A stretch of 64,000 bases of DNA, taken from contig NW_021831284.1 of assembly GCF_006345805.1 (NCBI RefSeq), forward strand, positions 124,001 through 188,000, in the 5' to 3' direction. The stretch is from Octopus sinensis. Taxonomy: Eukaryota. Both the position numbers and the translations under genes were made by a program. Positions 6,761-51,582 of this stretch are shown one piece after another (positions within the stretch are counted from its first letter, which is position 1; each line of letters starts with the position of its first letter). Under the pieces are notes generated by a model that was not told the DNA's origin, made no database searches, and saw nothing but the letters and a program-made list of their open reading frames with translations.

Positions 6761-8675
6761 TTAGTAATAAGCATAAATCTCTTGTAATGTTTGTGGAGCC
6801 TTTGCATTCATGTGATTTGATTTAATAGTACAATATCCTTTTAAGTGCTTGTGGGTCTCACGCATAAAAATCCCTGAAGACCTGAAAATAAAAATACATT
6901 AAACTATACGTGAGATTTTCATCTAAAATTATATATATTTATAAAATAAAACCTTTAATTTTTCGACGGTATACAAATATTTCTAACAATGGAAGTCCAA
7001 CAAAAATAATTGTCGAAAAAAAGATCAGTAGAATGTACACGAGAGAAATAGATTTTTTTTCCTCTAAATTCATATACATTAAAAAAATTCACCAAAGTGC
7101 AAAAAAACTTTGATTGTATAATTATCTTCTAAAAATCCATCAGATAAAATGCAAGTGAGATTCATTGCTGGAGGATCATTTTTTGGAACATTGTTGGATT
7201 TCAAATAAAATAAAAAATTGCTTATATTTCCTTCAGATTTTATATTATAGGAGAGATCATTTTTTGTTGTATTTAGTACATTAAACAACCATTTGAAATT
7301 CATTTTTCTAATTGGGTCGACTTTTCCACCACATGAAATTTTATAATGATTTCTTCCGATCTTTTCAATTCGATTATAGTAAGGTAGGAATATAAATGGC
7401 GTTTCTATGATTTTGAGGTAAACCGTTTTAGCAGCTCTTGCAAATTTGTTGTAAACAAGACAACGAATGCTCATGGACTGAGTTACATTTATGATAGTAA
7501 ACGTTCTATTATCTTTAGACAAAAATGATATAAAATCAAGTGGATGTGTTCCTAAATCGAAATAGCAGTTGAATAGTACCGTATTCTACTGAATCCAAAT
7601 ACCACTTAATTTGGGGCTCAGGATATCCTCCTACCCAGGTGCACATAAAAGTCGCATTATCCCCTTTTGTTTTATTGAGTGAGACAAAATCATGGGAAAT
7701 AGAAGGTGATTCTAACATTAAAAAAATATATTACCGTAAAAAGAAAGTTTAAATTTTCTTTCAAGGTACGAATATTTATAATTCTTATACGAAGGAATGC
7801 AAATTAGTTCCCGGGTTGGATATGTCGCATTTACACCCACAAATAATCCGTCAGTGCCTATTAACGTTTTCCCCTCGTAATATGAAATCGTGTCATATAT
7901 TCTAAAATTAATATTATTTCACAAACTTTCCAAAAAATATACATGGATGAATTAATCCGGCTGTTTTAGAATTAATGAGTACATGATCTCCTCTTGAAAA
8001 TGTGTGTCCTCCCGAGGGTATGATATGTTTATTCATGGGCTTAACATTATGAAAATGAAAAATTTTTTTTTCATATTTGCCTTCACATATGAACTGACAA
8101 AATATATCCTCCTCGAGAAAATATTTAATGTAAAGATTGTTATTTTCCGTTTGCATTCTGTCATTTTTTGACTTGAACTTGATAATTTGTTTGAATCCAT
8201 TATTTGGGCAATATTTGTACCAGATGCAGTCAGTACTAACGCCTTTACTTTCTAAAGCTGCATAAGGGGACAAATAGTTGTAAAAAACTAGAATTATTCA
8301 CAATTTCGAAATACCAGTATATTTATTTAATGCCTCAACTTTAAATGGGAGAGATGTTTCCCGACCACATTTGTTTTCAACAGTGCAACTAAATATTCCT
8401 GATATGTTGTAGTCCTGATTGAATGTAAGATTTCTGCCATCTCTATAATAAGGTAAATCTTGAGTGAAGTCAATGAGAATCCCATCTTTGCTCCATCTAT
8501 AAATATATTATATAATTATCATTTACTTATATTCATGATCTGGTATACCTTCTATGGGACATTGTATGGTGTAGTTTAAGTAATTCAGAAAGTAAGTTGA
8601 GTCTGACATGTCCATAGTTGGAGGAAGACATTCAGCTATTATTTGAACAGATAATATCAATAGTATTAACAGCAT
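6761..8675 (-). CDS. Five-Ig-like-domain type I membrane protein, copy 1, long Tyr-motif tail
   Basis: Manual splicing gives an open frame: signal MLLILLILSVQIIAEC; D1 CPIE..WSKDG..FSCTVEN; D4 CTWVGGYPEPQIKW..CLVYN; D5 CGGKVDP..KW..CILSDG; TM ISLVYILLIFFSTIIFVGLPLL; tail ending LKGYCTIKSN..TLQEIYAYY*. Introns 23-30 nt, including a 13-nt microexon at 6910-6922. Confidence 0.85.
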
Positions 8676-9249
8676 TTCAATTTATTTGCGATCTAATTGC
8701 TACTTGTGTCATTGGTTTTTCTCTATTTATGGAAATATTTAAAATGTTTATAATTAGCGTTAATTATAAAAAATAAACTTTGCTGATAGTTTTTTCGTTT
8801 GTGTAAATCAATTTCTAGTTTTTCCTTATTTGGCTAAAAATTTATACAGCCAAACATGAACATAGTGAATTTCCCTTAATCACGGAACACAGTAGTTTTA
8901 ATTTCCTCTAAACTCAACTATAAAATATGATTTTTTAAACCGAAACAGATGTTGTTATTAACCAGTAGATTTTTTTAATTTTAATCTTATAAAAAAATTT
9001 TGAATTATTTAAGCTACGGTTTAGAAGAGTGATATGAACCTACATTTTTTTATATAAAAAATGCAGAACTCAAGACTCTGTATGCACATACAAAACTGTT
9101 TTTTGCGGCGACATTTATATCAATAACTCATGTTAGGCTGAACATAGCCTAAAACAATTTAGTCGAAATCGACTTTTTGATCAATAAAGAACATTATACA
9201 AACTTACTCGTGCAAAAGGATCAGAAGTGATTAGACATCGTTCTTTCTG

Positions 9250-9530
9250 CCAATCAAAAGGGATGATGGAAAATAAGCGACCAATCACGCCAATAATATC
9301 CACAAACCCGAATGATAAATATCTTACCGATTTGGTGAATCTAAGGTGTTATTAAGAAAGATATTATTGGGTATTTATTAGAAGTATTAAATTTTAGTTG
9401 CTGTTGACTCAATAGTTGCAACTTCAAAAAACTCAGAAGAAATATTATTTATCGAGAAAATCTTTTACACGATGGTCCTCCTCACATAGTTCATGCGGAT
9501 AATGGAAAATAGTTTAGGAACATAACTTCG
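9250..9530 (+). mobile_element. Degraded DDE integrase remnant (Ginger2/KRBA2-SCAND3-like)
   Basis: Reads KRPITPIISTNPNDKYLTDLVNL and GPPHIVHADNGK*FRN (integrase core D..DNG.EF pattern), with stops. Confidence 0.55.
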
Positions 9531-9665
9531 AATTTGCTTAACTTTCAAAATTCTAAAATGACCTTTCAGTTAAAGTTCAATATTTTAATCATATGCTTAA
9601 ATCTCTCAAAATCGATAATAGAAGAAATTACTCGCAGAAAAATTAAAGAAAACCAATATCAATGA

Positions 9666-10341
9666 TTATCTAATAACGGCAGGAACATCCACATCCATTT
9701 GGACATCTTGAGGCTTCAACTTTCCTGACTCCTCCATTTTCTTAGCCTGGATCCTCAGCCTCTTATCCTTCACATTCTTCCTCTTTGCATCAGCCAAATC
9801 ACTACTCATAAATAAAAACTGTCCACCTCATTTCTTTGAGCCTCTTTTGTTCTGACTGATTCTTATGAATATATTCCATAAGCGTTCTCTTACTCTTAAA
9901 TGTATTTCCCTTGCATTTCAGATATATTCGGTGATATCTGGATATTTAAAATAATTGGCAATACGTGTGACGGTCGATTTTTCCACTTTCCCTGTAGCTT
10001 TTCAGAAGACGACGTTGAATCCGAATTCTGTTGATCCACAGGCGTTTCTGAGGCATTCGAGCGTTAGCAGTGCCTCTCCTCTTTCCGATTCCAGTATGGC
10101 GACCCTTCCTTCTAGCTTCCAGTTTTATACGTATTCGGGCACGTGATTGAACTTTTACGGGCTTGCGGAAAATTATTCCGTTTTTTATCATTTTTCGAAC
10201 ACTTTGTCCTTGTGGGATATATTTTTAATATATACTTGAGTTGGCACTAGATATGTGCTGTGTCTCGTTTGAATCCAACCAAACACGTTTTTTCCCACAT
10301 TTAAGTATGTCAGCAGCTAATCTTCGTTGTAATCTCAGCAT
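9666..10341 (-). CDS. RPL19: 60S ribosomal protein L19 (eL19), 3 introns
   Basis: [57 protein letters not shown]; GT-AG introns of 25-27 nt. Confidence 0.97.
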
Positions 10342-10599
10342 TTCGTCTACTATTAAATTAAACACTACAAAACAAACAGCCACAAGAAAGGTGTACACGT
10401 GAAAATTTAAAATAATAATTAAAAAATAAAAGTTGTTAAGATTTTTTATGTTATAAATACATACAAATATTTAATTTGGTATATAAAGTTTTTTTCCTTT
10501 AGAACTTACAAATGTTGTTATTAATGCCACTTAAAGTTAGTACAAAAGGACAAAAAAAGCCGCTATTAAAACTAAAATTTTCGGATTTCAAAACCAGTT

Positions 10600-11910: not shown

Positions 11911-11939
11911 TATCAACTTATTGAAGATAAGGAATATCT

Positions 11940-13020: not shown

Positions 13021-13491
13021 CTACCAAATAAAATCTTTATTTTCCTTTAAAGTGTGATTTATAGAGTATTGGTGTAGTGACCACAGATTTAACTCACTAC
13101 AAGCTCTTTTATAGTCTTTTATAGCTTCGTCAATCTCCTCTTCTGTAAAGCCAATGTAGCTACTTCTGCTTGGAGGTTCATCCCATTTTGGATCTTTATG
13201 AAGTGGTTTGCAGTCGGCAAATGCTTCGCCAAAAGTTGAACGATCTTTAAAACAATTATACATACGTGTGCGTTTTGGTGTGGGTTCATCTGGGTATTGA
13301 TATGGAATTGGTTCAACCCCAGATGAATTGTAAATAAAATCATAATCTAAGATCGCATCTCGTTGGGCTTGGAGTTCGTCCCGAATGGGTTGACAAAAAT
13401 CAAATGCATAATAAAATCCATTGTAGTTATATACATTATTATATCCACTGTAGTTGTATGCATTGTTATTTCCGCAGTAATTATTATACAT
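13021..13491 (-). CDS. Intronless orphan ORF (156 aa) with Tyr/Asn-rich N-terminus
   Basis: Long stop-free frame in AT-rich DNA starting MYNNYCGNNNAYNYSGYNNVYNYNGFYY; no family recognised. Confidence 0.45.
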   Translation of the reverse strand: MYNNYCGNNNAYNYSGYNNVYNYNGFYYAFDFCQPIRDELQAQRDAILDYDFIYNSSGVEPIPYQYPDEPTPKRTRMYNCFKDRSTFGEAFADCKPLHKDPKWDEPPSRSSYIGFTEEEIDEAIKDYKRACSELNLWSLHQYSINHTLKENKDFIW

Positions 13492-16375: not shown

Positions 16376-18127
16376 TTAAAAAATCAACTTTTTTCTATTT
16401 AAATTTCTTCGACGATAAATGAAAAATCCGACCAGTGAAAGACATATAAGAATAAACCCCGACCAAACAATCACAATAATATTGATATTCGTGTTTTGCA
16501 CTAATTTATACTAAATAAAAAACTTACCAAACGAAACTGTAATTGTTTGAGTGACTTCTAAAAATCCATCTGATATTATGCAGGTGAGAGGCGCATCTGA
16601 TAAATAAGTTTTTGAGAAATTTTTTGAATTTTCATTAAAGAAGAATTTGCTGATATTTTTTTCAGACGTTATAAAAAAGACTGAATCATCCACATTGTGT
16701 CGTACTGGCGTTCCATTGTATAACCAGTTTATTTTCATTTCTCTGAGTGGATCGACAGTTCCTTTACACACGATTCCGATTTGGTTCAACTCCTCCACAC
16801 GGATACGATTGAAATGTGACATGAATATTGTTGGCTTTTCTATAATCTTGACGTAGACTGTTTTTGCAGCTTGTGAAAATGCATTATAAACAAAACATCG
16901 AACACTCATGGACCGGGAAGTATTGATTATAGTAAACGTTTTATTGTCTTCAGATAAAAACGATTTAAATTCAATTTCAGTTGTACCTGAGTGTAATTAA
17001 TTGCTTAAATACCATATTCCACGGAATTTAAATACCACTTTATGGCTGGTTCTGGATACCCTTCTTTAGAAGAACATACAAATGTTGCGTTTTCTCCTGT
17101 TGTTACATTTAATGAACGAAATGAATCAGAAATAGAAGGAGGTTCTACAAATTTTTAATGATATTTAACCATAAATAGAAAGTGTAAAATTTTCTCCAGA
17201 ATGAAACAATTCCGTTTCATGGCTTAAAGGGACACATAATATTGTTCTGGTTGGCTGTTTCACATTTGTATTCACAGGTAAGTAGTTAGTTCCTACTAAG
17301 GTCTCATTTTCATAATATAAAATTTGGTCGTATAGACTAAAATATATATTTATGAACAAACCTCCCATAAAATAAACATGGCTGGATTTTCTCCACCGAC
17401 GAATTGTACTTGATTTTTACGTTTTCTCCTCTTGTAAAGACGTGGACCAAATAAAAAGAGAAACCTTTTTTAAATTAATAAACAAGAAAACTGATTTCTG
17501 GAGGCTGAATATAGAAAGTTTTGTTCTCATATTTTCCTTCGCAAACATAAGAAAATTTTGAATCATCCTTAACAAAGTATTTTATATACAAATCGTTATT
17601 CTCCACTATTAATCTGTCCGTTATTGACGTAGAATTAATAATTGACTTTTTTCCATCGTATATACTATTTCTATACCACGTGCAGTCCGTGCTAATGCCT
17701 TCACTCGTTAATATAGTATTAAGAAAATTTTGTGCTGAGACAACTAAAAAAATAAATACAATAAATACAATTATTTTTAATCAAAGTCTCCACTTTGAAT
17801 GAAAGAGATGTTTCTCGACCATATTTGTTTTCCACTGAGCAGGTAAAAATTTCTGACTTGTTGTAGTCTTTGTCAAATATGAGATTTCTGCCATCTCTAT
17901 TATAAAGCAATTCTTCTGCGAAATCAATGGGGACACCATCTTTAATCCATCTGTATATATTATATAAATATTATGCACTTGTATTCGTATACGGAACTTG
18001 CCTCTATTGGACATTCTATAGTGTGGTTTAAATAATTCAAAAATTTTGTCTCATCTGTCATCTCCATGGTTGGAGGAAAATTGGCAGTAAATATTTGTGG
18101 AAATAAAACAAGCAAATTAAACAGCAT
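16376..18127 (-). CDS. Five-Ig-like-domain type I membrane protein, copy 2, short tail
   Basis: Open spliced frame from MLFNLLVLFPQIFTA through five domains homologous to copy 1 (D1 about 59/87 identical by hand). TM IIVIVWSGFILICLSLVGFFIY, then RRRNLNRKKLIF*. An additional 3' splice is possible. Confidence 0.85.
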
Positions 18128-28429: not shown

Positions 28430-28858
28430 TGTACTACGTCCTCATCACTCAAATCCGACGTAAATTTGGCGGATTGAAAGAGGACCGAAAATTTTCTGGA
28501 GCTTGTGAACTCTGAAATGTATCCAAATTGCTTATTCCATCTAAAATCTCACGCCAATGGGGATGTGATGATATCTCCAGCAAAGCTAAAGCGAAAGCGG
28601 TCATACTTACATTGGAAAAGCAGTCTCGCTTGTTTCGGCAGCGCACTAGACCTGAAAAGGGTGCGTGGCTTAATGCCATCACTTCCTTACACTCTGGAAC
28701 TCTTCTCGTAATGACTGTGTAAGGATTGGCGTAGAAATGCGTTTTGGACTTAATGTTTGTTGGAAGGTCAATGCCGATGTGGTAGTGAACTCGATACCAA
28801 AGGATTACATCCCCTTTCATGCAAAAGGAGTGCTGGGCGTGTTCCCAGACACACCTGA
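28430..28858 (+). mobile_element. Older CRE-like fragment, second copy of the CRE-Ig module
   Basis: Closely matches 5281-5579, with frameshifts; reads GAWLNAITSLHSGTLL and CRCGSELDTKGLHPLSCKRSAGR. Confidence 0.8.
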
Positions 28859-28918
28859 AACGTTGTAATTCTTGTATAATATAAATTTTCTGCCATCTTT
28901 ATGATATTGAAAAATTTG
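28850..28918 (-). pseudogene. Fragment of Ig-family domain-1 exon fused to the CRE fragment
   Basis: Minus strand reads QYHKDGRKFILYKNYNVSGV, with the same junction as at 5571. Confidence 0.6.
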
Positions 28919-29252
28919 TGGATGACATATAACTTCATCATGCTATTTTTGAATGTTTGGAATATTTGGAAAAACATGTATTTAATGATATTAATGACAA
29001 AGATGGAGTTGGCTGACTATGTTGTGTTTATACTACAGAATAGTAGTATTCTCATCCCCATTATGAACCAACAGAAGATCTCCTCGTTTGCTAAATTAAT
29101 AATCTCTTCTTCAACCCTTCCCAATGTCATCCCCGATATTTATAACTTTCTCAAGTCCACCAACTTCCTTGAACTGTCCCACCTCTACACCAATCTCCTC
29201 ATATCCTCGGCTAACCTTATCAAGACTGTTCACTTCGACGAGATAGAGGGGA

Positions 29253-31100
29253 CTTCCCTGAAAGGGAATGTAGTCATTCCGTCAGGACGCTTTCCATCAC
29301 TCCGACAGAGACCGACTGGGTCTAGAGTGGAGGGGAAACCTGCCTACTCTAGTGCCCTTTTCACGACGTCATTGAGGTGAGTGTGGCGAGGAATTCTGCC
29401 AGCGCTCTTCTTGCACGATAGGGCGTGCAAACCGTTCGGCGAGATCGTGGACCCGCACCGGCTGACAGATGTCCAGGCCCAAGCGTAAGCAAACACCAAT
29501 CCGTAAGGATTCGTCGTCAAGAAGTAGTCCCGTACTAGGGGTAGGGAGTGCTTTGAGCCAGTCTCCCGTATGCGGCTGGCAAGCGCAGTTTAAAGATCCC
29601 AGTTGGACTTAGTCCAACTTTGACCGAAGTTTGCACAGAGTGCCTGAGCAAAAGATTTTGACCCAGTTCTTTTGAACTGAAGGGATCGTCGGAAAATCCA
29701 GACCGAGTGACAACCAAATACGGGAGGCTGATGAGAATTCGGAAAGCTCGTTAAGTTCGAGAGAGGGAAAAAGAACCGAGCAGACCGAATTCCTGGATGC
29801 CGAGGTCGAAGAGAGATAGCAAGGAAAGGCTAGGTCCTTGCAGGAGCGAATCCCGATCCCCCCGAAACGTATAGGTAGGCACGCACGGGTAAGACCAACG
29901 CCAGTGAATCTCGAATTAAGATGGAATATCAGCGAAGTGTGGATTAGATTGTCGATTGCAAATAAAGAATTGGGAGCCACGAAACAAGGCGAAGAACGGA
30001 GGATGTATGTAAGCCTCGGGATAAAAAGGAAATTCCTCAGCAAGAAAAACGCCATGTGCGAGTCAAGCCCCCGGATCCGCTAGATAAGCAGCTTGAATTC
30101 TTCCCATTTAGACGATAAGGTCTTTAAAATTCCATGTTCGGAAATTGGTGACCCCAGAATAACTAGGTCGTTGGAAGGTGTGAGCCTTAACCCAGCAATC
30201 AGACCGCATAGGGAAGAAAATGTGTGAGAAAGAGCCCCCGAGGATAGCGAAATATTTACGAGTTCGCATTTACGACCATTTAAAGATAGACCGATCTCCG
30301 CGAAACCAGACGTGATTTTGTTAATGTTTTCCATAACGACATCCAAAGGTCCTCCAAAAGTAACATCGTCCAAGTACCAAAAATTGACGTTGGACGCAAG
30401 GTTGCGTGCAATATGGTCAATATGGTCAACAGAGAGGGCAAACAGCAATGGCCCCAGAGGGTCACTCTGCTGAATACCGCATTCGGACATAATGGTTTCG
30501 CCATGAAAGAGGAGACAGCTTGGGGAAGAATACGCAAGATTTACGATTGGCCAGAGCTCTGGGGATCGTTTTGAGACCACCTCGAGCATTTGGTCACGAC
30601 GGACACAATTGAAAGCATTACTGACATCCAGTTTGACAATAAACTCACAATCGTTGGCTTTAGAATGTAGAGTTGTCGGGTGCCGTGCGCTAGGATTTCG
30701 CAGGAACCCTTAACGCCAACACCGTACTGGAAGGATAAGAACTCCGAACTCATAGTTGGAACCACCCTGAATGACATGATTTTGGCTGAGAGCCTTCTGA
30801 AGACGTTGCCGATAGCAATCGGTCTCACACCGCCCTCGGCTTTCTTCAGGGCAATAAGCCCCGCAGAAAAGAGAAGCTCACTTGCGACGGCTGGGATCGT
30901 GCCGGACACAATGCGCGAACAAAGACGGGTGATGGAGGATAATAAGTCCCTACCGGAATCGAGGGTTAGGCGTGATACGAGATCCCGGAGATGGATCCTG
31001 TCTTGTCTGAGGATTGAGTTATTGAGTCACGTGGAAAAGAGGAAGGTCAGTGAGGTCATTTTTCGCGTTGTGAGTTGTGGGGGGAGTTCGGTAAACAGTC
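29253..31100 (-). mobile_element. CRE-clade retrotransposon with RT domain, frameshifted and truncated at both ends
   Basis: LIALKKAEGGVRPIAIG, QYGVG, GIQQSDPLGPLLF, WYLDDVTFGG, LPIRFGGIGIR, RPDGMTTFPF. Confidence 0.92.
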
Positions 31101-31650
31101 TGAAGAGTTGATTGACTCTCTGCTCAGTCAGCTCATTACTCACTCAGACTGTGTTGAGGCTCTCATTTCATCAGCCCCAAATCAGTTTTTCACAAATATG
31201 CTAAATGTTGATTTGCTCTCTGTCACAGTCGCAAGTATAAACACTGGATTGCCAAGGGAAAGTTGTCATCAATAGCAAAAACTATAATTTCTTTGTACTA
31301 CAAGGCATTCAAGCAACATTTAATTTCGAACTTGAGCATTCTGTCAAAGGAAATAAATATTTCTACAACCGAGGGTCTCCTTTCTTGGCTTTTGTCTATG
31401 GGAAGTGGGTTAGAACTGATAATTGAGAGTTGTTCTATCTCTGATGAAAACTGGCCTTATATATGTCTCTCAATGCTCTTTCCCCTTATGAGACACGAGC
31501 AGTCATTCTCCCAGAAATGTTTTAACAAGTCCCTCTGTGATGTGTTGGTGGCATTTATTCGAGTTCAGAAAATAATATACATACAACATGTGTCCTTGGC
31601 AATCAATTTGATGGTTTGCCGTTATAGCCATCCTGTAGAATCATAGTAAG
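31100..31650 (+). other. Unidentified coding-like segment (two overlapping frames), possibly a host gene fragment
   Basis: ORFs 31075-31275 and 31263-31646 read as helical, protein-like text; no family recognised. Confidence 0.3.
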
Positions 31651-33049: not shown

Positions 33050-34935
33050 GTCAGTGATTTCTCTTCTTCGCTTAAAAGAAGAGTTTGCAACAAAATTCTC
33101 ATCATTTTCCATTTCTGCGTCAAAGTAATTGTTCAACTGAGTGTCCTCACGACATGCCAGCTCCGCAAGTTGATTGGCGGCAGAGGCCGTACTCCTCGTT
33201 GTCTACCTTCATCCCATGTCTGTGTTCAATAAGCATACTCTCTAGAGTCCTCTTCAGCACAACCGACTGATGTATGTCCTCGTTCCTTTTCAATGGATAA
33301 CTTGTCCATATGACTTTTAAAGAACTTTGAGACAACTCCATCCCATGTCAAGACAATTGGAATAATCTTCACTTTTGCTTCATAGAGAACTGACAGTTCG
33401 TTTGCAAGCAGGTCATATTTGTGAAATTTCTCCACTTCCACTTGCTTTAAACGTCTTGCGAGTAACTCCCACTTCGATTAAATGAATTTCTCTTTTCCTC
33501 TTGTCATAAACGAAGATATCAGGTTTATTGAATTGAACCTTTGTTTCAGTCATAATTGAAGTGTCAACTCTGATTTCGACATTATGGGTCGACATTGTTG
33601 ACACGACTGAATGGCCTTTCAATTTCCTGCTTCGTTTTATTCCATACATTCGACACAAGTGGAGATGAATACACTTTACCACTTCGTTGTGTCTTCGGAG
33701 ATAATCACTGTTTAGCATCCTACCACACCGCGTGGCTAGATGGTCAACAGTCTGCCTGCTTTTTTTTGCAGTGGACGCATAGTGATCCCGTGTATGCAAA
33801 GAACAAATTCCTATCTTGCAAAAGACAGTACAATGCTTCGCTCGTGGACCATTGTTCCCTTTCGATAGCATTGCGAAGAAGTAGATATGTCGACATCTGA
33901 TTCCTCCATACATTTGAACATCACCGAGTGTAGTGATTTACTGTTAATTTCGTTAAGCAAGAGTTTCCTTTGTGCGTCCTTCAGTAACTCATGGTCAGAT
34001 TTTCCCTGCCGACAGCTGCATATTTGGAGACAAGAAATTCTGCGATTGTGGCTAAGTGCCATTTTTTTCCTTTTATTACTCGCAGAATACCGACCTCCGC
34101 AGACAGGTAGTCGACTGTTTTTCCAAACTTTTAAGAAACTGGAAGAGCATTAATTCGCTTTTGAAAGAAATTGAGGCAAGTCCTCTTCCAGGGTCTTGCG
34201 GTCCAAATACAACCTCTCCTTATTTGCAGGCTGGAGGTGTAACTTGAGAGTCGTAAGTAATCGGCGTATTTGTTGGTCAATCTCATCAATTCGTAGGTTC
34301 GATATTGATTAGCCCAATATAATAATTATATAGGGATAATGCATATTCATTGATTCCACGAAACAAATTTACAGCATTCAGTTTGTGTTTTGACAACATA
34401 GTTATCCTCTTCTTGACATTCTCCAATATGGAGTCCATAACTTTATTCTTGAGAACATTACTTCCGCCATCTTCAAGTACACCCAAGTAGCGATATCCGT
34501 TGATTCCATCGACAGTCTCACAGCATGATAAAGATTCCACATTAGATGCTGATTTTTCGGAATTCATCTCTAGACCGACACTTTCAAAAAATCCATTAAC
34601 AGCCTCCATCATTTTGACTAACACATCTTCTTTGAGGGCAACTATTTTCAGATCGTCAATAAAGAAGAAATGATTGGTGGAGTATGTCAACATATTGGGA
34701 TCTTCCCGATAATTTCGAGTTTGGGAAACATGGAGTTAAGCATCCTGCTTAGGGGATCCATCGCCATAACGAATAGCAGCGGGGACAATGAATCTCCTTG
34801 AGTATTCCCCGGCTTAACTTTACTTTCCCAATTCTTTTCCATCGATATGTAAGTTTACTGTCCACTTCTTGACTATGTTCTTTACAAAGCTGACAATCCA
34901 ATGTGGTATTCCAGAGCAATCCAATGAAACTAAGA
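33050..34935 (-). mobile_element. R4/Dong-like non-LTR retrotransposon, 5'-truncated within RT, frameshifted
   Basis: GILQGDSLSPLLF, NHFFFIDDLK, YRYLGVLE, TVDHLATRCG..RRHNEV, FNKPDIFVYDK..IEVG..EKFHKYDLLANEL. Confidence 0.92.
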
Positions 34936-34939
34936 TAGT

Positions 34940-35395
34940 CCCTTTATTAAAAATGAAACTAATTAACTAAGTAATTTTACTAACTAAGTCCAGAGCCTTC
35001 GAAGTGAGCAGAAGGTGGCACTCCACGCACCTCCTACCCTTCTTCCTCCTCTTCTCTGGCACTGTAGACCTTCGAGAAGGTGCAGTCCAGCGCCTCTCGC
35101 TGACTAAACATCAGGAAAGGGTTGGATCGGCGAGCATCAAACGAGACACTCTCCAGAGTCCTCTTAAGAACAGTTGACTGTATATAAGCCTGTAGAGACT
35201 TATCTACATCCAACTGTCTTAAGTACCGCTTGTGGTATTTGGTGACCAGTCCATCCCATGTCATCACACACGGAATGACATGGACTTTGCACTGGTGCAT
35301 CAGTCCTAGCTCGTTTGCAAGGAGGTCATACTTCCTCCTTTTCTTCACTTCCACTATCTGCAAACGGTCTAGGCACGTGATGCCCACCTCCACGA
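34940..35395 (-). mobile_element. Second R4/Dong-like subfamily, 3' fragment abutting the previous element head-to-tail
   Basis: EVGITCLDRLQIVEVKKRRKYDLLANELG..VMTWDGLVTKYH, then a 3' UTR with AATAAA just before the junction. Confidence 0.88.
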
Positions 35396-36808: not shown

Positions 36809-38011
36809 TTAGACATTATTTCGTTTCCTTCTATTCCTTTCTTGGTAGTGCTCACTAGGCACGTGACATCCCTCCAGTACTTGTTGGACACGACTCGACT
36901 GATGATTGTAGCCGTGGTGACCTCACTCCCCGAGTCGATTTCCCTCACAATCCCCCTCTTGTACGCAAACTAGGGGTCCCTCGGAACAAAAGATACCTTA
37001 TAGGGGTCTCCTGTCATGGACTTTGTCTTGCCATGGCACACCACCCCGATCTAAGAATAGCTGGGAAGGAGACGTTAAGATAGTCCAAGAAATCATCCCC
37101 CAATTGAAATGGAGCCTCCATAATAACGTCGTCGACATTCTTGTTGGCGAGAAGAACCATCATCCTTTCAAAGAAGGTACATATTGGGTAAGACCCCGTG
37201 GAATTGTATATTCGCTGGTCAGAGTATAGCCCCACAATGAGATAGTCTCCCAACTGTTTGGCCTTTTCAAGGAAAGACACGACCCCCACATCTGCGAGTC
37301 CTCAATAAAGTATACGATATATATCAAAGGCCCCGTCGACATAGACCACCTTCGACTGGGGAGTTCTTGGTCGTGCCAGGGCCAGGAATTGAGTGATAAC
37401 CTTGGCGGAGGGATACAAGCAACTGTCAAGAGTAGGGACCGGATTGGTCAGAATTCTACACATGTGGTTGAATTGTGACCTGTCGATAATGTCAGTCGAC
37501 GAAACTCCGATGGTCCGTGGATACTCTCTGTGGGTTACCGTGTGGAATACAAATATCGGCCACTGGCCTTTATAAACCGATAGCAGTCCTCGTTGTTCGA
37601 GTCCCGAGTGATATCGTCTATCATACTACACTCAAAATACCCGCATGAGCACAAAAGTCACATTTTAGCTCGTCCAAAGTATTCATTTGCACTACATACG
37701 GACAGTCCCCCACCACCTCACAAATCACTCACTTAATCCACCTCTTTCGGCCATCGGAATGACTCCAGGATTCGTATTCTCTCCGACTGACTAAACACTG
37801 GCATTCCCTTCACTTTCCCAATCTCCTCTACAATATTCACATTCCTTACCGTCCGAGTGCACCCCCACCACCAAGTCGTGGCCAAAACAGCTCGCCTACA
37901 TTACTCACTCTCTCTACCTTGAACAGAGCATTCGCGTGCCCGTAGTGCACCAAATCAAAACTACTTATCGCCAACATAAAACACTCACCACCCATCCAAG
38001 TACACTCGCAT
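36809..38011 (-). CDS. PCYT2: Ethanolamine-phosphate cytidylyltransferase (two CT domains), 11 introns
   Basis: MRVYLDGCFDLVHYGHANAL, LVVGVHSDEEI, CDFCAHADDIT, RTIGVSSTDII, YVDGAFDIYHVGVVSFLEKAK, DPYK..RGIVREIDSGS; introns 22-28 nt. Confidence 0.93.
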
Positions 38012-38509: not shown

Positions 38510-38690
38510 AACTTGTCCTTCAATGAGCTATCTCGCCGTCATATCTTTTCCCCGATCGCAGTGGAGACGTCGGGAATCCTCGGTCCGAGAACTAAAAAAT
38601 TCCTTATTAAACTGGGGACCTGGCAAGCAGAAGGAGAAACGATCATCGAGAACGGACATGGCTTCTTGTTGGCGGGAAGAACCATCATCC
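38510..38690 (+). mobile_element. CRE-like 3' remnant
   Basis: LSRRHIFSPIAVETSGILGPRTKKFLIKLG. Confidence 0.7.
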
Positions 38691-39604
38691 TCTCAAAGAA
38701 GGTGCATATTTGATAGGAACCTGTGGAATTATAAATAGGCTGGTCAGAAAATTTTTCCTTTCAACATTTTTACATCTAATTATATCATCCACAATCTGAA
38801 ATATAATTGATGCATTCGGCGAAGAATTTAATTCGATAAGATAGGTAATTTGAAGATCCGTTATTTTTCATTAAGAATATTTACAAATTTTTCCTTACCG
38901 GGCTCAGTCTCATCCAAAAATCGTTTCATTGATTAACAATCCGATTATCTGATTGACACCTCTTTAGTCCAAATTTTGACATTACTTCGATATTTTAATT
39001 CTTCGATATTTTAATTGACCGAGTTTCATATTAGGGTTACAAATATATGTAAAACAAAACAATACTTCCCATTAACGTTTTATCTTGACTAACTTGTGCA
39101 GTAAATAGATATTTAAATCAACTGGCAACATTAAAAACACACAAAGCATATGGTGGGTTAGTTTACTTACAATAGACTGCAACAATATCGTAAAGTCAAA
39201 ATAGATATAAAAATGTCAGAATGGTATAGTTGAGAAGTAAATTTGTAATTTTTCTTTTTTTATATTTAAAAATATCTTTGTTTTAACACTCGAAAAGGAT
39301 TTTCACTATGTAGAGATTATGTTTTATTGCATCGGATTTTAAATTGGAAAATCGGATTTAAGTAAATGGTTCAGACTCCAAAAAGAATTTATTTTTGATT
39401 GGAAATTGAGTAATTTTTTGTTTACAAATAGCCTTCCACTCTAAAGACAACTTCCAGGAACAAGAAAAAACTAAAAGTAGTAATTATTTATCAGTTTTTT
39501 AATAAATCATTTATTTTTTTGATTATTAAAACTATTTAAGACATTATATTTGGATTTATTGAATTTAATTCCTTATTATTTAATAACGAGAACTAGGAAA
39601 GAAA

Positions 39605-41640
39605 TTAGTGTAAGTTATAATTAAATAAATCCTTTTTGTTTTTGCGTTTATTTTGACGACACGAGTTTGTTGCGAAATATAGCACGATAATAATTATCAG
39701 CACTGGCAAAAAACCCCATAGCATTCTGAAAAAAACCGTAATTTTTGATGGCACTAAATTATAGCCATTTACCCAACTTACCAAATTTCAATGAAACGGT
39801 GATTGTGTGTCTTGCTTCTAGAATCCCATCTGAAACGATGCACGTGAGATTGGTAGGGGGTATGTCAATTTCATTTTTGATGTCTTATTAAATAAAAAAC
39901 TGCTTCCGCCTTTCTTGAATATTATAGAGTAGACGTAGTTTTTTCTGCTGATTTGTGCCGGTTTCCCGCCAAATAACCAGCTTATTTTCATTTTCCTGAG
40001 TGTATCAACAGTTCCATCACATGTAATTTCATGAAGATTTAGCTGAGTCATTTCTGTAAAATTTAAATATGGCATAAATATTTTCGGCCTTTCTATAGTT
40101 TTGAGGTAAACTGTTTTAGCAGTTTGTGAATATTCGTTGTGAACAAGGCAACGAACACTCATAGATCGGCTCGCATTGATTATATTAAGTGTAGTGTTTT
40201 CCATAGACAAATAAGACTTAAAATCCAGTTTTGTTGTGCCTAAATATTGTTAGAAGCATGAAGTACCATATTCCACTGAATCCAAATACCATGTTATTGT
40301 GGGTACTGGGTACCCTGATTTCCAGAAACAGCGGAATACTGCATTATCTCCTTGAGTTACATTTAGCGAGACCAATAAATCGGAAATAGAAGGGGGTTCT
40401 AATAATGTTTAAAAGAAATTAAACCGTAAATTGAAACAGTGAATTTATATTCGATTGGATCATGTAAGATAGTATTATTTGTATCCAAAATGGTATTGTT
40501 TGTGTCAAAAGTCATGCTATTCGCATCCAGAGTGATATTGTTTGCAACAAGAATGGTGTTATTGACATCCACAATCGTGTTATTCGTATCCAGGATAGTA
40601 TTATTTGTATCCAGGATAGTATTATTTGTATCCAGAATGGTGTTAGTCCAATTCTGAATGTTATTATTTGCTTCCAGAATGGTATTGTCGGCATCGAGAA
40701 TGGTATTATTTGTATCGAAAATTTCTTTACTGATGCAGAGAAAAGTCCGTGTTGGCATTTTTATTTTCCCGTTAAAATCAAAGTGATTCGATTCTAATAA
40801 TGTTGTTTTTCCTTCTTTTACTTCTGAATAGACAATTTCGTCGAGTTTTCTAAAATTTTCATTCCAGTAAAAACCTCCCAAAAAACAGACAGGGTTTAAT
40901 ATTTTCGGACATTCCATACTTAATTATGACATTTTGTCCCCTTGTAAAAACATGTGTCAGATCAAACGGAGTTGCTTAAATATTTGAAACCGAACAAACT
41001 TGTAACGTTATTTTCAAAGTGAAATTCTTTACTTTCATATTTTCCCTCGCAAATAAAAGAACAGTTTATATCTTCTTCGATGAAGTATCTTATGTATAAA
41101 TCGTTATTTTCGACTATAAGTCTATCAGTGTTCAATGAGGAAGTAATTATTGATTTGGTTCCGTTTTTTTCACAATATTTATACCATGAGCACTCGGTGC
41201 TAACTCCCTCACTTCTGAGTATTGCGTAAGGTTTTTCATAAGAGGAAAAGACTAAAATTATTTTGAATTTAATAAATACCCGTGTTTTTAATTAGAGGCT
41301 CCACTTTGAATGGAAGAGATATTTCTCGACCATGTTTGTTTTCAACAGCGCAACTAAAAATCTCTGATATAGAGTAAATCTTGTTGAATATGAGATTTCG
41401 ACCATTACTTCTATAAGGTAAATTCTGTGTAAAATCAATGGGAACTCCTCCTTTAAACCATCTATAAATATATTATGTAATTATCATGTACTTGTATTCA
41501 TCGCCTGGATTAGCTTTTATGGGACATTGTATAACGTAGCTTAACTGATTCAGATAGTAAGTTGTGTCAGACATATGCATAGTTGGAGGAAAAAAAGCAG
41601 TCGCAGTATGAAACAAAAATATCAGGATATTCAATAGCAT
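39605..41640 (-). CDS. Five-Ig-like-domain type I membrane protein, copy 3, with heptad insertion and short tail; one 1-nt homopolymer frameshift in D5
   Basis: Signal MLLNILIFLFHTATA, homologous D1-D5, TM MLWGFLPVLIIIIVLYFA, tail CRQNKRKNKKDLFNYNLH*. The frame in D5 is restored by one extra base in the 5-T run near 39875. Confidence 0.82.
40465..40716 (-). repeat. 12 tandem 21-bp coding repeats (consensus DTNNTIL)
   Basis: ORF 40399-40917 residues 68-151: DTNNTIL DADNTIL EANNNIQ NWTNTIL DTNNTIL DTNNTIL DTNNTIV DVNNTIL VANNITL DANSMTF DTNNTIL DTNNTIL. Confidence 0.95.
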
Positions 41641-44799: not shown

Positions 44800-47700
44800 T
44801 TTTTAACAATCTATACATTTATTTCAGAAACGAGTTAATTATAAGACAGGCTAGTTTTCCGCGGCTGACGACATAATCGAATAGGCATTGCCGCGAACAA
44901 CGGCCAAACCTATTCTTTGTCGAAGCCATGTTGTTCCCTCTAATCGTTTTTTATATGAGCAATTTTTCGTCCGATTTCTTTAAGGAATGACTCAGTTACA
45001 GTTCCTGTGACACCGAAGTCTCGACTGCCACAGGAACAAAGCGGTACGAATCCCCGATTGTGGAATATTTGGCAATTTTGCTTTTTCAGCAAAGTTAGCG
45101 GCCGATCCAGGGACGAACGAAAAGGAAATGTGATGTTCTTTAAAGTAAAAGTGTCCACGCATGTCGAGTCCCAAACTAGTGGTTTTCCCCCAGAGTAGGG
45201 GAAAAGAGTCACTCCATCTGGCCTTCTCCCATCATTACGGTTAAGACCCGCAGGTTCCAGTCTTGCTGGGAATCCTGCTGCCTCTAGGGCACGTCGTATC
45301 ACATCATTCAATGCGGCATGTCGAGGGGTTCGACCTGCACTTCTTCCGCAGGATAGAGGGTGCAGTCCTTTGGCATCAACAAGGCCTCCGCAACGACAGC
45401 CGTGAACTTGGCAAATATCCAGTCCCAGACGAAGTGCTACACCGATTCTCATAGAATTATTGTCCAATAGATTGCCAAGGGCAGGACACGGGAGAGCATC
45501 AAGCCACGCGCCACTATGATGGCGTGCTCCGGACAAGAGACATGTGAGTCGATGCTGATTGCCCCTCTGTTTGTATTTTTGGACGATGTCGTTGCATAAA
45601 ATCGAATCCCAGTTAGTCTGTTTGAATGTCTCCGCCGGAATCATCAACCAAGTTCCACTCCACCGTTCACAAGCTCTAGCGAACTCCGGCTCCAAGGAAA
45701 ATTCAGAAGGGTTACGTAGAATTTCCTGGACCAGATCCCAGCTGCTTGAGAGCGACGAGAGATAAGCTGGTGCTGCTACTTCCAATGCGGACCTGATTTC
45801 GTTGGCAGTTTACACTGAATCCATTCCAGATCATCAAAACGAACGTTTAAAATAGTTTCGGCCGTGTCTTTCAGTGTCTGATCAAGTAATAAAAGGCTGT
45901 CTCGTTGTGCATAGCAAGGGCAGCTCCTTAGAGCATAAAGAAGTCTTCGCATGCAGATACTCGCTCTCATGAAAAAAAACGCAGTATGCGCATCAAGGAG
46001 GGATATTTGTTGTGTAAATAGTGATAGGTTTTCTGCTTTCTTCCGAAGGTGTTTACGCAATTCTGCGTCACCAAGTGGACCACCGAGGAAATATACCTCG
46101 TCCCGAGCCGTGGTAGAAATCCCTTTAAGCAAATGGTTGAACTGTTGAGTAATTCGCATGAATTCGTCATTGGAGTACGTAATATTGATCAATTCCGATT
46201 TGTTTGTATTAATTTCCAAACCGAGGTTTTTTAAAGCAGGAGCAATTTGCGAAATTCCTTCGTAAACAGATTCCCAAGTTCCACCGATAGTGGCATCGTC
46301 GAGATACCAGAGATTGAGTTCAGTTCCAGTTGAACGTGCAACATCATCGATGGCCAACGAAAACAGTAAAGGTCCTAGTGGATCTCCTTGCTGTACTCCA
46401 GTTCGTGACTTGATAATTTCGTTACCGAAGACTAGAGACGATTCTTTCCCATAAGAGAGGTTCACTATCTGAATTATCTCCGGAACTCTCTTCCAGCACG
46501 ATCATAAGTCGATCTCGTCGCAGTGTGTTGAAAGCATTAGATATGTCTATTTTGAGCCCCATGCGGGGGGTTTTCGCACTACAGCCAAAGTAGCATCTTG
46601 TCGCATGCACAGAGGCCTCACATCCATTTGTAATACCGACTCCCAATTGAACTGGCGAAAGTTCTCCGCTTATCCGCGGACAGACTCTTTTAGCGACAAT
46701 CTTTGCCGCAAGTCTTCTGAAGTAATTAATAACTGCGATCGGTCTTACTCCCCCGTCATTCTTTTTAAAGGCCAATAGGTGCGCAAAGAATAGTAGTTCC
46801 CTTGCATAAGAAGGGATCTTTCCATTGACAATTTTAGAAATCAGCGACGTAATGGATTTAACCAAATTTGAACTATGAACTGATCTCGCAGTAAAATCTT
46901 TGACATGTCCCGGTCGCAGGCCCTCCAAGCCTCCACTGCTGCTTGGAGCAAACGACACGATTCCGGAAATCACCTCCTGTTCGGTGATGATAATGCTGAG
47001 CAAATTTTCCGGCATAGTGAATTCTTGGTAGTCCGTAGGTGGGTAAGGGTGTTTACGTATCAGATGTTCGATCACTGAAGGAGTCGGGACTAAAACCGTA
47101 TCGTCGTTGCTCACGACGCGCAAAGCAGCACGGATATCACCCTCAATGAGTTTCCTATTCACTCTGTCTCTTATGCTATCCTGGTTTAGAGTTATATTTC
47201 GTCTTTCATTCAGCTTTGTGTGGTGTACTTTGTCGTCAATTGATTTTATATTTCTCTTGATAATACAGGATATGGACTCATTCTGCGTAGCGTTTTTGAA
47301 TTGTACTCCAAGAGCAAGAGGTGCAAAGCTCAGCAATTGAACCAAAGAGGCCAAGCTGTTAGTGGAGAGAGCATTATCAATTAGCTGGCTAAGACATGAA
47401 GCAGCAGAAATACGGGCGGATTTCGGAATCCTTAGAGGAATCTTCCTGGGCTTCCGTAGCTCCGATAGGTGTAGAAGGATGAGATCTGTATTTGAGGGAA
47501 GATCAGGCGGGTTAGGCGCATATTTATTTCAGGAGGATTGAAATTCGGTTTGTACAAGAACTCATGCATCGACGACAGTCCCATTTGTATAGCGTCTTTG
47601 CTGCTTTGTTGGTGATTTTAACACATGAAAGATGGAAAAATTCACCGCAAGATGAACAGTTCATGCCAAACCGGCGTTTGTTGCTCAGTTCGCAGGAAGA

Positions 47701-47854
47701 GCATATCGTGTTCTCTCTTTTTGGAATGATGTTCGGAATGATAGTTTCACTTAACAACATGCATTGTTCTTCATTGTAGTTGTCCGTAAGCATCAAAGTT
47801 TCTTGTTTATTCACAGCAAAATTCAACCCCACATCAGCCATCACGTAATTCATT
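44800..47854 (-). mobile_element. Near full-length CRE-clade retrotransposon (PHD finger, RT, Zn knuckle, RLE), several frameshifts
   Basis: CSSCELSNK..CSSCGEFFHLSCV..WDCRRC; FKKNDGGVRPIAV; GVQQGDPLGPLLF; WYLDDATIGG; RRPDGVTLFPYSGGKPLVWD; 3' AATAAA and a short A-run at 44798-44804. Confidence 0.93.
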
Positions 47855-48499: not shown

Positions 48500-49000
48500 T
48501 GACTAGATAATCAAACATTTGAGCTTAATCGGAAAGCTTTTTACAAATGATTGAAGGGAGGCGAGACTAAAAATTTTATTCAAGTGGATAGTGAAGAGTT
48601 TGGAACATATTGGCAGAATATGTGGCGAAAAAAACAGTTGAGTGTTCAGAATATGGAGATTGAAAACAGGATGATTGGAATAGAGGACGTAACAGTCTAC
48701 GTTTTGAAAAGTTTATTTCAGGAGATCGTCAAATATTTGCTAAGTGGAAGAACCCAGGCTCCGATGGTGTGTATAATTTCTTTCTGAAGTTCACATTACT
48801 TCATGAGTCAATTTTCGGACAAATAATTAATGTCATAGAAGGAAAACTACTCCAGGAGATTGTTTCTAAACAGGGGTGACACATTTTATTCCAAAGTGTG
48901 AAAACCCGGTGTGAACTAAGGTAGTCCAAGAAATCATCTCAAGCAATGGTGTCCCCAAAAGAGTTACGGCCTATAACATGTATGGGGTCTCTCTATGAAC
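48500..49000 (+). mobile_element. Degraded R4/Dong-like pre-RT fragment
   Basis: FGTYWQNMW and KWKNPGSDGVYNFFLK-like motifs across shifted frames. Confidence 0.55.
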
Positions 49001-49621
49001 TAATGATAAAATGTTTAAATACTAAGCTTGGAGAGTTTGTGGAATTTTTCTCTGAAAACAATGAAGCTCTGCTTTAATGAACAGAGTTAAACAAGGAAAA
49101 TGGAACAGACTCCACGCTGCATAAATCTACGGCAAAAAGAATTTGATTTAATCGCAGAAATTTATACAATATGCATTTTCTCAACTCAGTGAGCGAACAG
49201 AGGCATACAATCTACTATAAAGAAAACCCTTGAGAGGATGATTGTCTTTTATAGAAAGAAAGTTGAATTAAAATTATTAAAGAAATGTTTATTTTATTTG
49301 AGTTGTTATTTCTGAATCTGTTTGCTACATAAACAGTGTTGTGAGTGAAACTTATTTAGCCTGTCATTTCGTATTATACGTACTCCGATTGTTAATGTTT
49401 AGAAAACTCCAATATGTGAGAAAGATGTACAGCCCAAGATACCCACGAAATCTCTTTTGTCAGGATTGTGTTAAACCTTAGAAATTTTAAGGGGTTCCAC
49501 CATGGCCTTCATAATGACTTCGGGAAAAGTTTATGAATCATCTTGTCTTTGACAGGAAAATTATCGCATTCTAAATAACTATTCTTTTTAAGTTTTTTTA
49601 ATTTATTTAAAAATTGTATAT

Positions 49622-51582
49622 TCAGTAGTACTCATAGATCTCTTGTAATGTTAGTGGACCTTTGCTTCGATTCATATTTGATTTGACGTAACAATATCCT
49701 TTTAATCGGTTTTGATTCTTGCGAATAAAGTCTGTCAAGGGTCTGAAAATAAAAATACATTAAACTATACTTGGAATTTTTGCCTAAAATTATGTATATT
49801 TATAAAATAAAACCTGTAATTTTTTGACGATATACAAATTTTTTTAATAAAAAGATTTCAATAAAAATAATTGCCGACAGAACAATCAACAAAATGTTCA
49901 CATGAGACACCGGGATTTTTTTTCTCTCTATGTTCATATCAATTAATCAATCTTACCAAAAAGAAGAGAAACTGTAACTGAATGATTTTTTTCCAGAAAT
50001 CCATCTGATATGATACACGTGAGAATAATCGATGGAGAATCAATTATTGGTTTATTGTAGGATGTTAGGTTAAATATGAAACTACTCCTATTTTCGGCAG
50101 CTATGATATAATAGAGGAAATCATTTTTTATGTGTTTCATTTGCTTTCCATTGAGCAACCAATTTATTTTTATTTTTCGCACCGGGTCAACTGTTCCATC
50201 ACAAGTAATTTTATATATATTTGACGTAATCATATCAATTCGGTACGAATAAGGCATATTTATTATTGGTTCTTTAATGATCTTAAGATAAACTGTTTTT
50301 GCAGATTTTGCAAAAGCATTGGAAACGAGGCATTTAACACTCATAGACCGAGTTGGATTGATAACTTTCAATGTGGTTTTATCTGTTGATAAAGTTGAAT
50401 TAAAGTCAAGAATGTTTGTTCCTGAAACTAGTATCAGCAAATAATAATACCATATTCTACTGAATCCAAATACCAGGTTATTGTAGGTTTTGGATATCCT
50501 GCTTTTAAAAAACAAAAAAAAGTGGCGTTATCCTTTTCTGTTACATTTACCGATTTTAAGGAATCGGAAATTAGAGGTGATTCTAAAATTTTTTAATAAA
50601 ATTTAACCATAAATTGAAATTGTGAAATATTCTCTTTTATTAAAAATTTCTTCTCCGTAGAATGAAGGAACACAGGAAAATTCTGTATTCATCAGCTCTT
50701 CATTTGCATTCAAATTCATTCCGTCAATGTCTACTAATATATCTTCTTTGTAATATAAAATTGAGTCATACAGACTAAAATTAATATTTATGAATAAACT
50801 TTCCAAAAAATAAACAAGGATGAATTTTCTCAACGGAATTAAGCTCGATTGTTATGTTTTGACCTCTAGGAAAAGTATGAACCAGGAATAGGTTAAGGCC
50901 TTTTTGTCAAAGAACAAAAAAACCTGTTATTTCTTGAACAAAAGAAAACTTTTTTTCTTCATAATCTCCCTGGCAGACATAGAAACAAGATGAGTCATCT
51001 CTGTGGAAGTATTTTATGTATAAATCGTTATTCTCAACGATCAATCTGTCGTTTATCGACTCAAAAATTATCAATGTATTTTCTTCTTTTTCTGGACATG
51101 TTTTATACCACAAGCATTTTGTACTAACGCCTTCAGTCCTAAGTACAGTAAAATAACGATCTTGAAGGTCGTAGACTAGAAAAAGCATGCTTAAACATTA
51201 CTATTTTCTTTTATTAATGGTTCAACTTTTATTGGAAGAGATGTTTCTCTGCCACATTCATTTTCAGCAGTACAGCTGAACACTCCTGCGACTTTAAAGT
51301 TTTCGTTAAATATCAATTTTCTGCCATCTTGATGATAAGGAAGATTTCCAGTAAAGTTAATGGGGATGCCCGCTTTAGCCCAGCTATATTTAAGTTTAGA
51401 TAAAAATACGTGTATCCATCAACTGGATTCATTTCTATAGGACATTCTATGACGTATTTCAAATAATTCAGCATATATGTTGTTTCAGACATGTCCATTA
51501 TAGGGGGAAAACAAGTATTAATTGCTGGACCAATTAATAAATGCATTATTAGAAATATATGGACCTGATCTAGAAAATCCAT
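49622..51582 (-). CDS. Five-Ig-like-domain type I membrane protein, copy 4, long Tyr-motif tail
   Basis: Open spliced frame: D1 CPIE..WAKAG..FSCTAEN, D4 CFLKAGYPKPTITW..CLVSN, D5 CDGTVDP..CIISDG, TM VNILLIVLSAIIFIEIFLL, tail ending LKGYCYVKSN..TLQEIYEYY*. 13-nt microexon at 49771-49783. Start codon could be the first or second Met. Confidence 0.85.

Follow-up and report, generated by a model that had tools for sequence, protein, structure and literature searches.

Long- and short-tailed immunoglobulin-superfamily genes and a predicted microexon on a probable dicyemid contig within an octopus assembly

Among the cell-adhesion molecules of the immunoglobulin (Ig) superfamily (Ig-CAMs; for example, Kirrel/SYG-1, nectin, CADM/SynCAM, L1/NCAM and Robo), L1 carries the AP-2 signal YRSL, and nectin and CADM, as does neurexin, end in Tyr/Phe-rich PDZ ligands. 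Vertebrate paired receptors (KIR, LILR, SIRP, PILR and Siglec) are encoded by clusters of Ig paralogs with either long Tyr-bearing or short tails, and receptor isoforms can be shortened by intron retention or read-through. Most regulated microexons have lengths that are multiples of 3, and neuronal microexons were reportedly described by Irimia and colleagues in 2014. Here we analyse a window of 64,000 nucleotides (nt; that is, the whole stretch of DNA studied) that corresponds to about positions 124001–188000 of VCDQ01000570.1 (854 kb) in GCA_006345805.1, the PacBio/Hi-C assembly of Octopus sinensis, where PPIL1 is on record. The minus strand of the window holds four colinear Ig-receptor paralogs (copies 1 to 4) and one decayed fragment, as located by tblastn with exon peptides and by a family profile. 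An earlier note, made from the letters of this DNA, had proposed that the cluster combines two tail classes according to the logic of paired receptors.

The reading that we favour, at a probability of roughly 0.55, is that these genes form an adhesion or recognition family from a dicyemid source (dicyemids being parasites of the octopus kidney that consist of about 30 cells and rank among the simplest animals). The ectodomains would act in cell–cell or cell–host adhesion and recognition, and the long tail of copies 1 and 4 would couple to the cytoplasm by recruiting partners through two motifs, GYxx(I/V) and a Tyr-rich element placed strictly at the C terminus. Copies 2 and 3 would be tail-less, adhesion-only derivatives, in which loss of a phase-1 splice donor led to read-through into the former intron and to a stop after 12–21 mostly basic residues. 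We regard a predicted microexon with near-invariant introns and the probable dicyemid origin of the contig as the main yield of the analysis.

Four paralogs with long or short cytoplasmic tails

Gene models were obtained by enumerating frame-preserving GT...AG pairs and choosing the pairs conserved among the copies; all 30 of the 30 modelled introns are canonical (GT-AG) and 23–30 nt long, and the predicted products of the four copies comprise 522–615 residues. In copies 1, 2 and 4, matches to Ig_3 (E = 1e-13 to 3e-17), I-set and Ig_2 exceed the gathering scores of Pfam, and the spacing of Cys and Trp, in an alignment judged by eye, suggests five Ig-like domains. All four copies have a single 19-residue hydropathy peak near the C terminus followed by Arg/Lys-rich sequence, and 9–18 N-glycosylation sequons per protein; the N-terminal hydrophobic stretch passes the scan threshold in copy 1 only and is hydrophobic by eye in the others. 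With Ig-fold domains, a signal peptide, a single transmembrane (TM) segment and a cytoplasmic C terminus, these are type-I membrane proteins of the Ig superfamily, and the family is a lineage-specific one with a signal peptide, five Ig-like domains and one membrane span. Matches in the PDB were generic only (Robo, contactin, SYG-1, NCAM and CEA; best E = 4e-10). No homolog at E ≤ 0.001 emerged when protein libraries were searched with copy 1 or with an alignment of all four copies, and a HMMER scan of 1.84 billion representatives with a profile of the largest exon returned only 22 generic multi-Ig proteins, none of which belongs to the family or has a similar tail. The four genes appear to be unannotated in the source record, in which PPIL1 is the only gene called within ±10 kb although copy 4 (49622–51582) falls in that span; because no gene is called over copy 4, the absence of the family from protein libraries is explained. 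No further paralog was found in the 5 kb adjoining the window.

The copies differ widely from one another. Pairwise amino-acid identity is 49–54% (49% for the whole proteins of copies 1 and 4), and all pairs have a synonymous divergence (dS) of 1.1–1.75, that is, saturated, with a ratio of non-synonymous to synonymous divergence (dN/dS) of 0.20–0.34; near-identical ectodomains across the two tail classes were thus not found among these copies. As a separate observation, copy 1 has no intron at junction 3 (7927–8287, minus strand), where copies 2, 3 and 4 have one of 24–27 nt; there its reading frame continues and gains about four residues, pointing to either intron loss or exonisation.

Copies 1 and 4 each carry a cytoplasmic tail of 44 residues, which six-frame translation reads on the minus strand as ...LKGYCTIKSNHMNAKAPQTLQEIYAYY-stop (ending at 6761) and ...LKGYCYVKSNMNRSKGPLTLQEIYEYY-stop (ending at 49622), with the blocks LKGYCx(I/V)KSN and, at the very C terminus, TLQEIYxYY-stop. 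The two tails agree at 21 of 44 residues, the same level of identity as over the entire protein, with the matches mostly in LKGYC, KSN and TLQEIY.YY. Given that they are equal in length and stop at coincident codons, and that synonymous sites differ preferentially (proportions of differing synonymous and non-synonymous sites, 0.60 and 0.32; dN/dS of about 0.35, as in the ectodomain; Fisher P = 0.007), the tail behaves as constrained coding sequence, and purifying selection on it as a coding region is supported by the comparison of the two copies.

Copy 2 ends ...FFIY-RRRNLNRKKLIF-stop at 16376, 12 residues past the membrane span, and copy 3 ends ...LYFA-TNSCRQNKRKNKKDLFNYNLH-stop at 39605, 21 residues past it. 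As both lack the phase-1 donor, their translation runs into sequence homologous to the 5′ end of the intron of copies 1 and 4, and A-rich insertions (lengths counted from the alignment of TM-exon ends; Table 1) encode extra basic residues. The only GT in the last exon of copy 2 (16387–16388) is in phase 2, with the first AG 46 nt downstream; splicing there would yield about 20 Tyr-free residues and still a short tail. When the 2.9 kb and 2.3 kb that separate these short-tail copies from the next genes downstream were searched for a Tyr-tail exon by blastn and tblastn, only chance-level matches were obtained (best, PQTQKEI, E = 2.4).

The open reading frame (ORF) of copy 2 is intact over 522 codons, and its seven introns are all canonical. 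In copy 3, an A5 run upstream of the TM exon (39874–39878) contains a 1-nt frameshift, with frames open on both sides and through the TM segment to the stop; either a homopolymer error of PacBio sequencing or a disabling mutation of recent date could account for it. Between the ectodomains of copies 2 and 3, dN/dS is 0.20 at a dS of about 1.6, and purifying selection on the ectodomain is seen in copy 2 and over most of the history of copy 3, which argues that the short-tail state has long been compatible with function. Loss of the donor followed by read-through accounts for the short tails better than a designed decoy would. Exon 5 of copy 3 also holds TNNTILD-like repeat units (40469–40716, minus strand), each with an N-glycosylation sequon, and the other copies have no such repeat. 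The decayed fifth copy keeps the AAG/GT boundary without an insertion and has no recognisable tail exon; a duplicated FDFKSFLSDDSRK fragment lies at about 52390.

The descriptive part of the earlier note largely survives this analysis. Two tail classes do coexist in the cluster (long in copies 1 and 4, short in copies 2 and 3), and the absence of the Tyr motifs from copies 2 and 3 is borne out by the missing phase-1 donor and by the lack of a tail exon detectable by blastn or tblastn in the 2.3–2.9 kb before the next genes, to which their transcripts might otherwise have been spliced. The tail pattern that it quoted holds for the motifs but not for the spacer from KSN to K.P.TLQ, which has four residues rather than six, and its identity of about 23/49 has to be corrected to the value given above.

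A predicted microexon between near-invariant introns

In copies 1 and 4 the ORF of the tail does not directly continue that of the TM exon, and joining the TM donor to the strong acceptor TTTTCAG puts the tail in the wrong frame (giving GLQGFLCVRPTST-stop in copy 1 and DP-stop in copy 4). Two models restore the frame, both leaving the distal tail in the frame that the earlier note had read. In one, a single intron of 79–82 nt is removed by way of a second AG that lies 8 nt (copy 1) or 11 nt (copy 4) further downstream, at positions that are not homologous in the two copies. In the other, a 30-nt intron (8a), a 13-nt microexon and a 28-nt intron (8b) follow one another, with canonical sites and with TTTTCAG at a homologous position in both copies. 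We favour the predicted microexon, because it gives intron sizes that match the 23–30 nt of the family, gives equal tails (44 residues) and explains the pattern of conservation.

That pattern sets two introns apart from the others: introns 8a and 8b are identical at 57 of 58 positions (29/30 and 28/28), whereas the other six introns common to copies 1 and 4 are identical at 111 of 165 (about 67%), and the first 12 nt beyond intron 8b match at 3 of 12 positions (counted by eye). The excess has a binomial probability of about 3e-9, or 1e-9 if the GT and AG positions are omitted. At 13 nt, and with flanks so unusually conserved, the predicted exon falls within the usual bounds of a microexon (that is, at most 27 nt with unusually conserved flanks). 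Given that introns 8a and 8b are near-invariant while neutral sites elsewhere are saturated, splicing here appears to be under unusually strong constraint. No stable RNA structure emerged when the microexon region was folded (z-scores of +1.1 and +0.1), and the conservation is therefore not accounted for by structure; no Rfam family matched in the window, the intron 8a and 8b sequences have no other occurrence in the window, and the invariant 28-nt intron had no hits in a metagenome scan. Gene conversion was considered as a source of the identity and rejected, because it could not leave a diverged stretch enclosed by two identical ones: both the 13 nt that separate the introns and the 12 nt that follow them have diverged, and dS in the tail exon is saturated as elsewhere. 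The invariant introns of 28–30 nt around a 13-nt exon thus offer a compact natural case for studying what sequence the splicing of ultra-short introns needs.

The tail would be cut short by omission of the microexon or by retention of either intron, and copies 1 and 4 could therefore give rise to short-tail isoforms too; the predicted truncations are GFIL-stop in both copies if an intron is retained, and those given above for the wrong frame if the microexon is skipped. We think it unlikely, though worth stating, that the microexon acts as a regulated frame switch, in which inclusion would give the long Tyr-bearing tail, skipping or retention of either intron would give a short one, and the same choice would have become fixed in copies 2 and 3 when they lost the donor. 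The extreme conservation of the introns is what would be expected if the choice of the microexon were regulated.

Table 1. Positions of the four genes, their 3′ exons and introns, and the decayed copy (numbering of the window)
Feature	Position	Strand	Details
Copy 1, long-tail Ig-superfamily gene	6761..8675	minus	564-aa model, 9 exons, introns 23–30 nt, all junctions GT-AG; Pfam Ig_3, I-set, Ig_2; one TM segment, N-terminal hydrophobic signal
Copy 1 TM exon	6953..7063	minus	ends ...FVYRRKIK; phase-1 donor AAG/GTTTTA
Copy 1 intron 8a	6923..6952	minus	30 nt; 29/30 identical to copy 4; if retained, GFIL then stop
Copy 1 microexon, predicted	6910..6922	minus	13 nt, ATGAAAATCTCAC; 7/13 identical to copy 4; puts tail exon in frame
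Copy 1 intron 8b	6882..6909	minus	28 nt; 28/28 identical to copy 4
Copy 1 tail exon	6761..6881	minus	SSGIFMRETHKHLKGYCTIKSNHMNAKAPQTLQEIYAYY; stop 6761–6763
Copy 2, short-tail gene	16376..18127	minus	522-aa model, ORF intact, 8 exons
Copy 2 last exon	16376..16500	minus	TM segment, then RRRNLNRKKLIF and stop; 14-nt A-rich insertion; no phase-1 GT
Copy 3, short-tail gene	39605..41640	minus	1-nt frameshift (A5 run 39874–39878); in-frame 21-nt × 11.7 repeat (40469–40716)
Copy 3 last exon	39605..39753	minus	TM segment, then TNSCRQNKRKNKKDLFNYNLH and stop; 12-nt A-rich insertion; no GT from Arg codon to stop
Copy 4, long-tail gene	49622..51582	minus	model starts at ATG 51546; upstream in-frame ATG 51582 gives a better signal peptide
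Copy 4 TM exon	49814..49927	minus	ends ...FVYRQKIT; phase-1 donor CAG/GTTTTA
Copy 4 intron 8a	49784..49813	minus	30 nt
Copy 4 microexon, predicted	49771..49783	minus	13 nt, GCAAAAATTCCAA
Copy 4 intron 8b	49743..49770	minus	28 nt
Copy 4 tail exon	49622..49742	minus	PLTDFIRKNQNRLKGYCYVKSNMNRSKGPLTLQEIYEYY; stop 49622–49624
Decayed fifth copy	52400..52880	minus	3′ half only (parts of Ig4, Ig5, TM segment); several frameshifts; just upstream of copy 4

Origin of the contig and other content of the window

Several observations bear on the organism from which this DNA came. The PPIL1 of the window is 61% identical to that of Octopus bimaculoides, a protein whose cluster at ≥90% identity includes Argonauta, and its best matches are in gastropods (70–72%). 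Schistosoma was considered as a source and rejected, the best identity to a flatworm PPIL1 being about 68% and the contig lying in an octopus assembly. Among animals, introns shorter than 30 nt are known only from dicyemids and myxobolid myxozoans (PMC13644364), and Dicyema sp. has a median intron of 27 bp (PMC6543705); the introns modelled here, at 23–30 nt (n = 30), are likewise mostly below 30 nt. The genome of Dicyema japonicum, which was collected from O. sinensis, has about 37% GC and 49% repeats, with many long interspersed nuclear elements (LINEs; PMC6736024). Because of the ultra-short introns, the low identity of PPIL1 to its octopus counterpart and the host of D. japonicum, we suggest that the contig is probably dicyemid DNA that was co-assembled with that of the octopus host.

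If so, a probable parasite contig of 854 kb is hereby flagged inside a published octopus reference genome. Zverkov et al. reported only six Ig-domain sequences in dicyemids (PMC6543705), and the four genes described here would, if the contig is dicyemid, amount to most of the Ig-domain repertoire reported for the phylum. They would also be candidate surface molecules for cohesion between cells or for attachment to the kidney epithelium of the octopus, absent from the annotation of the host assembly. Were the frame switch real, the choice between long and short tails would be made by splicing in an animal of about 30 cells with about six reported Ig-domain genes.

The window as a whole consists of A+T-rich eukaryotic DNA strewn with remnants of LINEs and reverse transcriptases. 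Fragments of non-LTR (long terminal repeat) retrotransposons, with 41–48% GC in DNA of about 30% GC, lie on both strands at 4062–5689, 28449–31111, 33413–35393, 44940–47854 and 62329–62937, and include an RVT_1 match, reverse-transcriptase motifs of the YLDD type and a domain, HPLSC..SAGR..RH..LN, that recurs. Unrelated housekeeping genes stand between the Ig copies (that is, Peptidase_M48, a WD40 protein, a cytidylyltransferase and the cyclophilin PPIL1). Two cytidylyltransferase exons lie 1.5 kb apart on the minus strand at 38542–38760 and 37014–37289, the first a degenerate copy (IYNSTGSYQICTFFERMMVLPANK...) and the second intact-looking (IYNSTGSYPICTFFERMMVLLANK...); the degenerate exon is probably a pseudo-exon duplicate. 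A single-exon ORF at 13021–13491 (minus strand) encodes 156 residues with an Asn/Tyr-rich N terminus; it has no Pfam match, and a look-up of the exact ORF found no identical product on record.

Alternative explanations and comparison with known systems

According to the earlier note, the long tails are phosphotyrosine signalling modules (that is, EIY as a Src-type substrate and YxxI/V as an SH2-docking site), with the short-tail copies serving as decoys or for adhesion only. This reading, which we consider quite improbable, draws on the presence of both tail classes in one cluster, on the retention in copy 4 of all four Tyr of the copy 1 tail (P = 0.044) and on the purifying selection that acts on the tail. 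Direct reading of the tails, however, reveals none of the immunoreceptor tyrosine-based inhibitory, switch or activation motifs (ITIM, ITSM and ITAM, respectively), as the note had itself said of ITAM and ITIM. With ITIM taken as [IVLS]xYxx[ILV] and ITAM as YxxL/I, 6–12 residues, YxxL/I, the tails have Lys at Y−2 in KGYCTI and KGYCYV, Glu at Y−2 and Tyr at Y+3 in EIYAYY and EIYEYY, and 20 residues between the Tyr of GYC and that of EIY, with no Leu or Ile at +3 of the second motif. Nor does the remainder of the paired logic hold: ectodomains that are about 50% identical with a saturated dS (>1) are unlike those of paired receptors that share ligands, and the TM segment of copy 2 (NINIIVIVWSGFILICLSLVGFFIY) has no charged, and hence no basic, residue for adaptor pairing, copy 3 having one Arg at the outer boundary (FFRMLWGF...) and the short-tail members no conserved basic position. 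Tyr is, moreover, common throughout the proteins (5–7%), the tail being only mildly enriched, and the dicyemid literature consulted on Ig, SH2 and tyrosine-kinase content gave the remark on six Ig sequences and nothing on SH2 proteins, cytoplasmic tyrosine kinases, ITAM adaptors, Syk/ZAP70 or SHP phosphatases. The proposed YxxI/V signature does occur at the same position in both tails (YCTI and YCYV, each following a Gly at a distance of about 27 residues from the membrane); it is a low-information YxxPhi pattern in a Tyr/Ile-rich proteome, kept in two sequences only. The tails end in -AYY or -EYY, with Tyr at position 0 and Ala or Glu at −2, and do not match a class I or class II PDZ ligand. 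Judged from these motifs, a YxxPhi-type adaptor or sorting signal combined with a partner that recognises the C terminus seems at least as likely as phosphotyrosine/SH2 docking, and a sorting role would be plausible, given that the peripheral cells of dicyemids feed by endocytosis. The interpretation in the earlier note is thus partly supported: the two classes exist, and the signalling and paired logic is unproven and not favoured. The paired-receptor idea is at present an analogy, which would matter only if orthologs and phospho-signalling partners turned up.

It is also conceivable, though we regard it as unlikely, that the short-tail copies are simply decaying genes in which donor loss was the first disabling hit, with no functional system of two classes. 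The frameshift of copy 3 before its TM exon, the runaway 21-nt repeat in its exon 5, the wreck of the fifth copy and the abundance of LINE debris in the region would all suit such decay, yet copy 2 is intact over its 522 codons and seven canonical introns, the ectodomains of copies 2 and 3 remained constrained long after they diverged, and the frameshift of copy 3 sits in an A5 run of a PacBio assembly with the downstream frame open through the TM segment to the stop. A further alternative leaves the tail exon untranslated: the microexon would be skipped to the first AG, all four genes would have short tails (ending in GLQGFLCVRPTST-stop in copy 1 and DP-stop in copy 4), and the conserved blocks would be elements of a 3′ untranslated region. 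We hold this to be highly improbable, even though that first AG (TTTTCAG) is the strongest acceptor and an exon of 13 nt is unusual, because the LKGYC...YY frame is open across the whole exon in both copies with coincident stops at about 70% A+T, the differences are preferentially synonymous, the 71-nt intron required would be an outlier among 30 introns of 23–30 nt, and the conserved–variable–conserved pattern of 30, 13 and 28 nt fits two introns around an exon.

The reading that we favour, an adhesion or recognition family with long-tailed members and tail-less derivatives, has points against it as well. Both the microexon and the 3′ ends of the short-tail genes are predicted from DNA. If the frameshift of copy 3 is real, it truncates the protein before the TM span, and that copy may be decaying now, unless the frameshift is an assembly error. 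A single origin of the short-tail state is weakly favoured by the ectodomain quartet (bootstrap of 56–58% for copies 1 and 4 against copies 2 and 3), and the exact change that removed the donor is either ambiguous or not the same in the two short-tail copies; the donor may instead have been lost independently, or the long tail gained. The clustering of identities in the tail is marginal by permutation test (longest run, P = 0.18; two longest runs, P = 0.054), and the conservation of the Tyr motifs, which rests on two sequences, is likewise marginal. The attribution to dicyemids, probable as it seems, is indirect.

Compared with described systems, the family resembles Ig-CAMs in its type-I topology, its chain of I-set/C2-like Ig domains and its heavy N-glycosylation, and in a short tail of which a Tyr-based motif and the extreme C terminus are the conserved parts; it differs from them in having generic Ig matches only and no FN3 domains, and in a C-terminal Tyr that is not a canonical PDZ ligand. 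With vertebrate paired receptors it shares a cluster of Ig paralogs, some with long Tyr-bearing tails and others with short ones, but it lacks ITIM and ITSM, has no charged TM residue in copy 2, has ectodomains about 50% identical with saturated dS, and has copies separated by unrelated genes. The sequence that encodes the short tail is an intron in the sister genes, much as in receptor isoforms that arise by read-through or intron retention, except that the truncation is here fixed in the genome of separate paralogs. The predicted microexon, as in regulated microexons, is flanked by extremely conserved intronic sequence; unlike most of them, it shifts the frame at 13 nt, and its introns are only 28–30 nt long. 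We see the closest functional analogies in Ig-CAMs with short motif-bearing tails and in the truncation of receptors by intron read-through.

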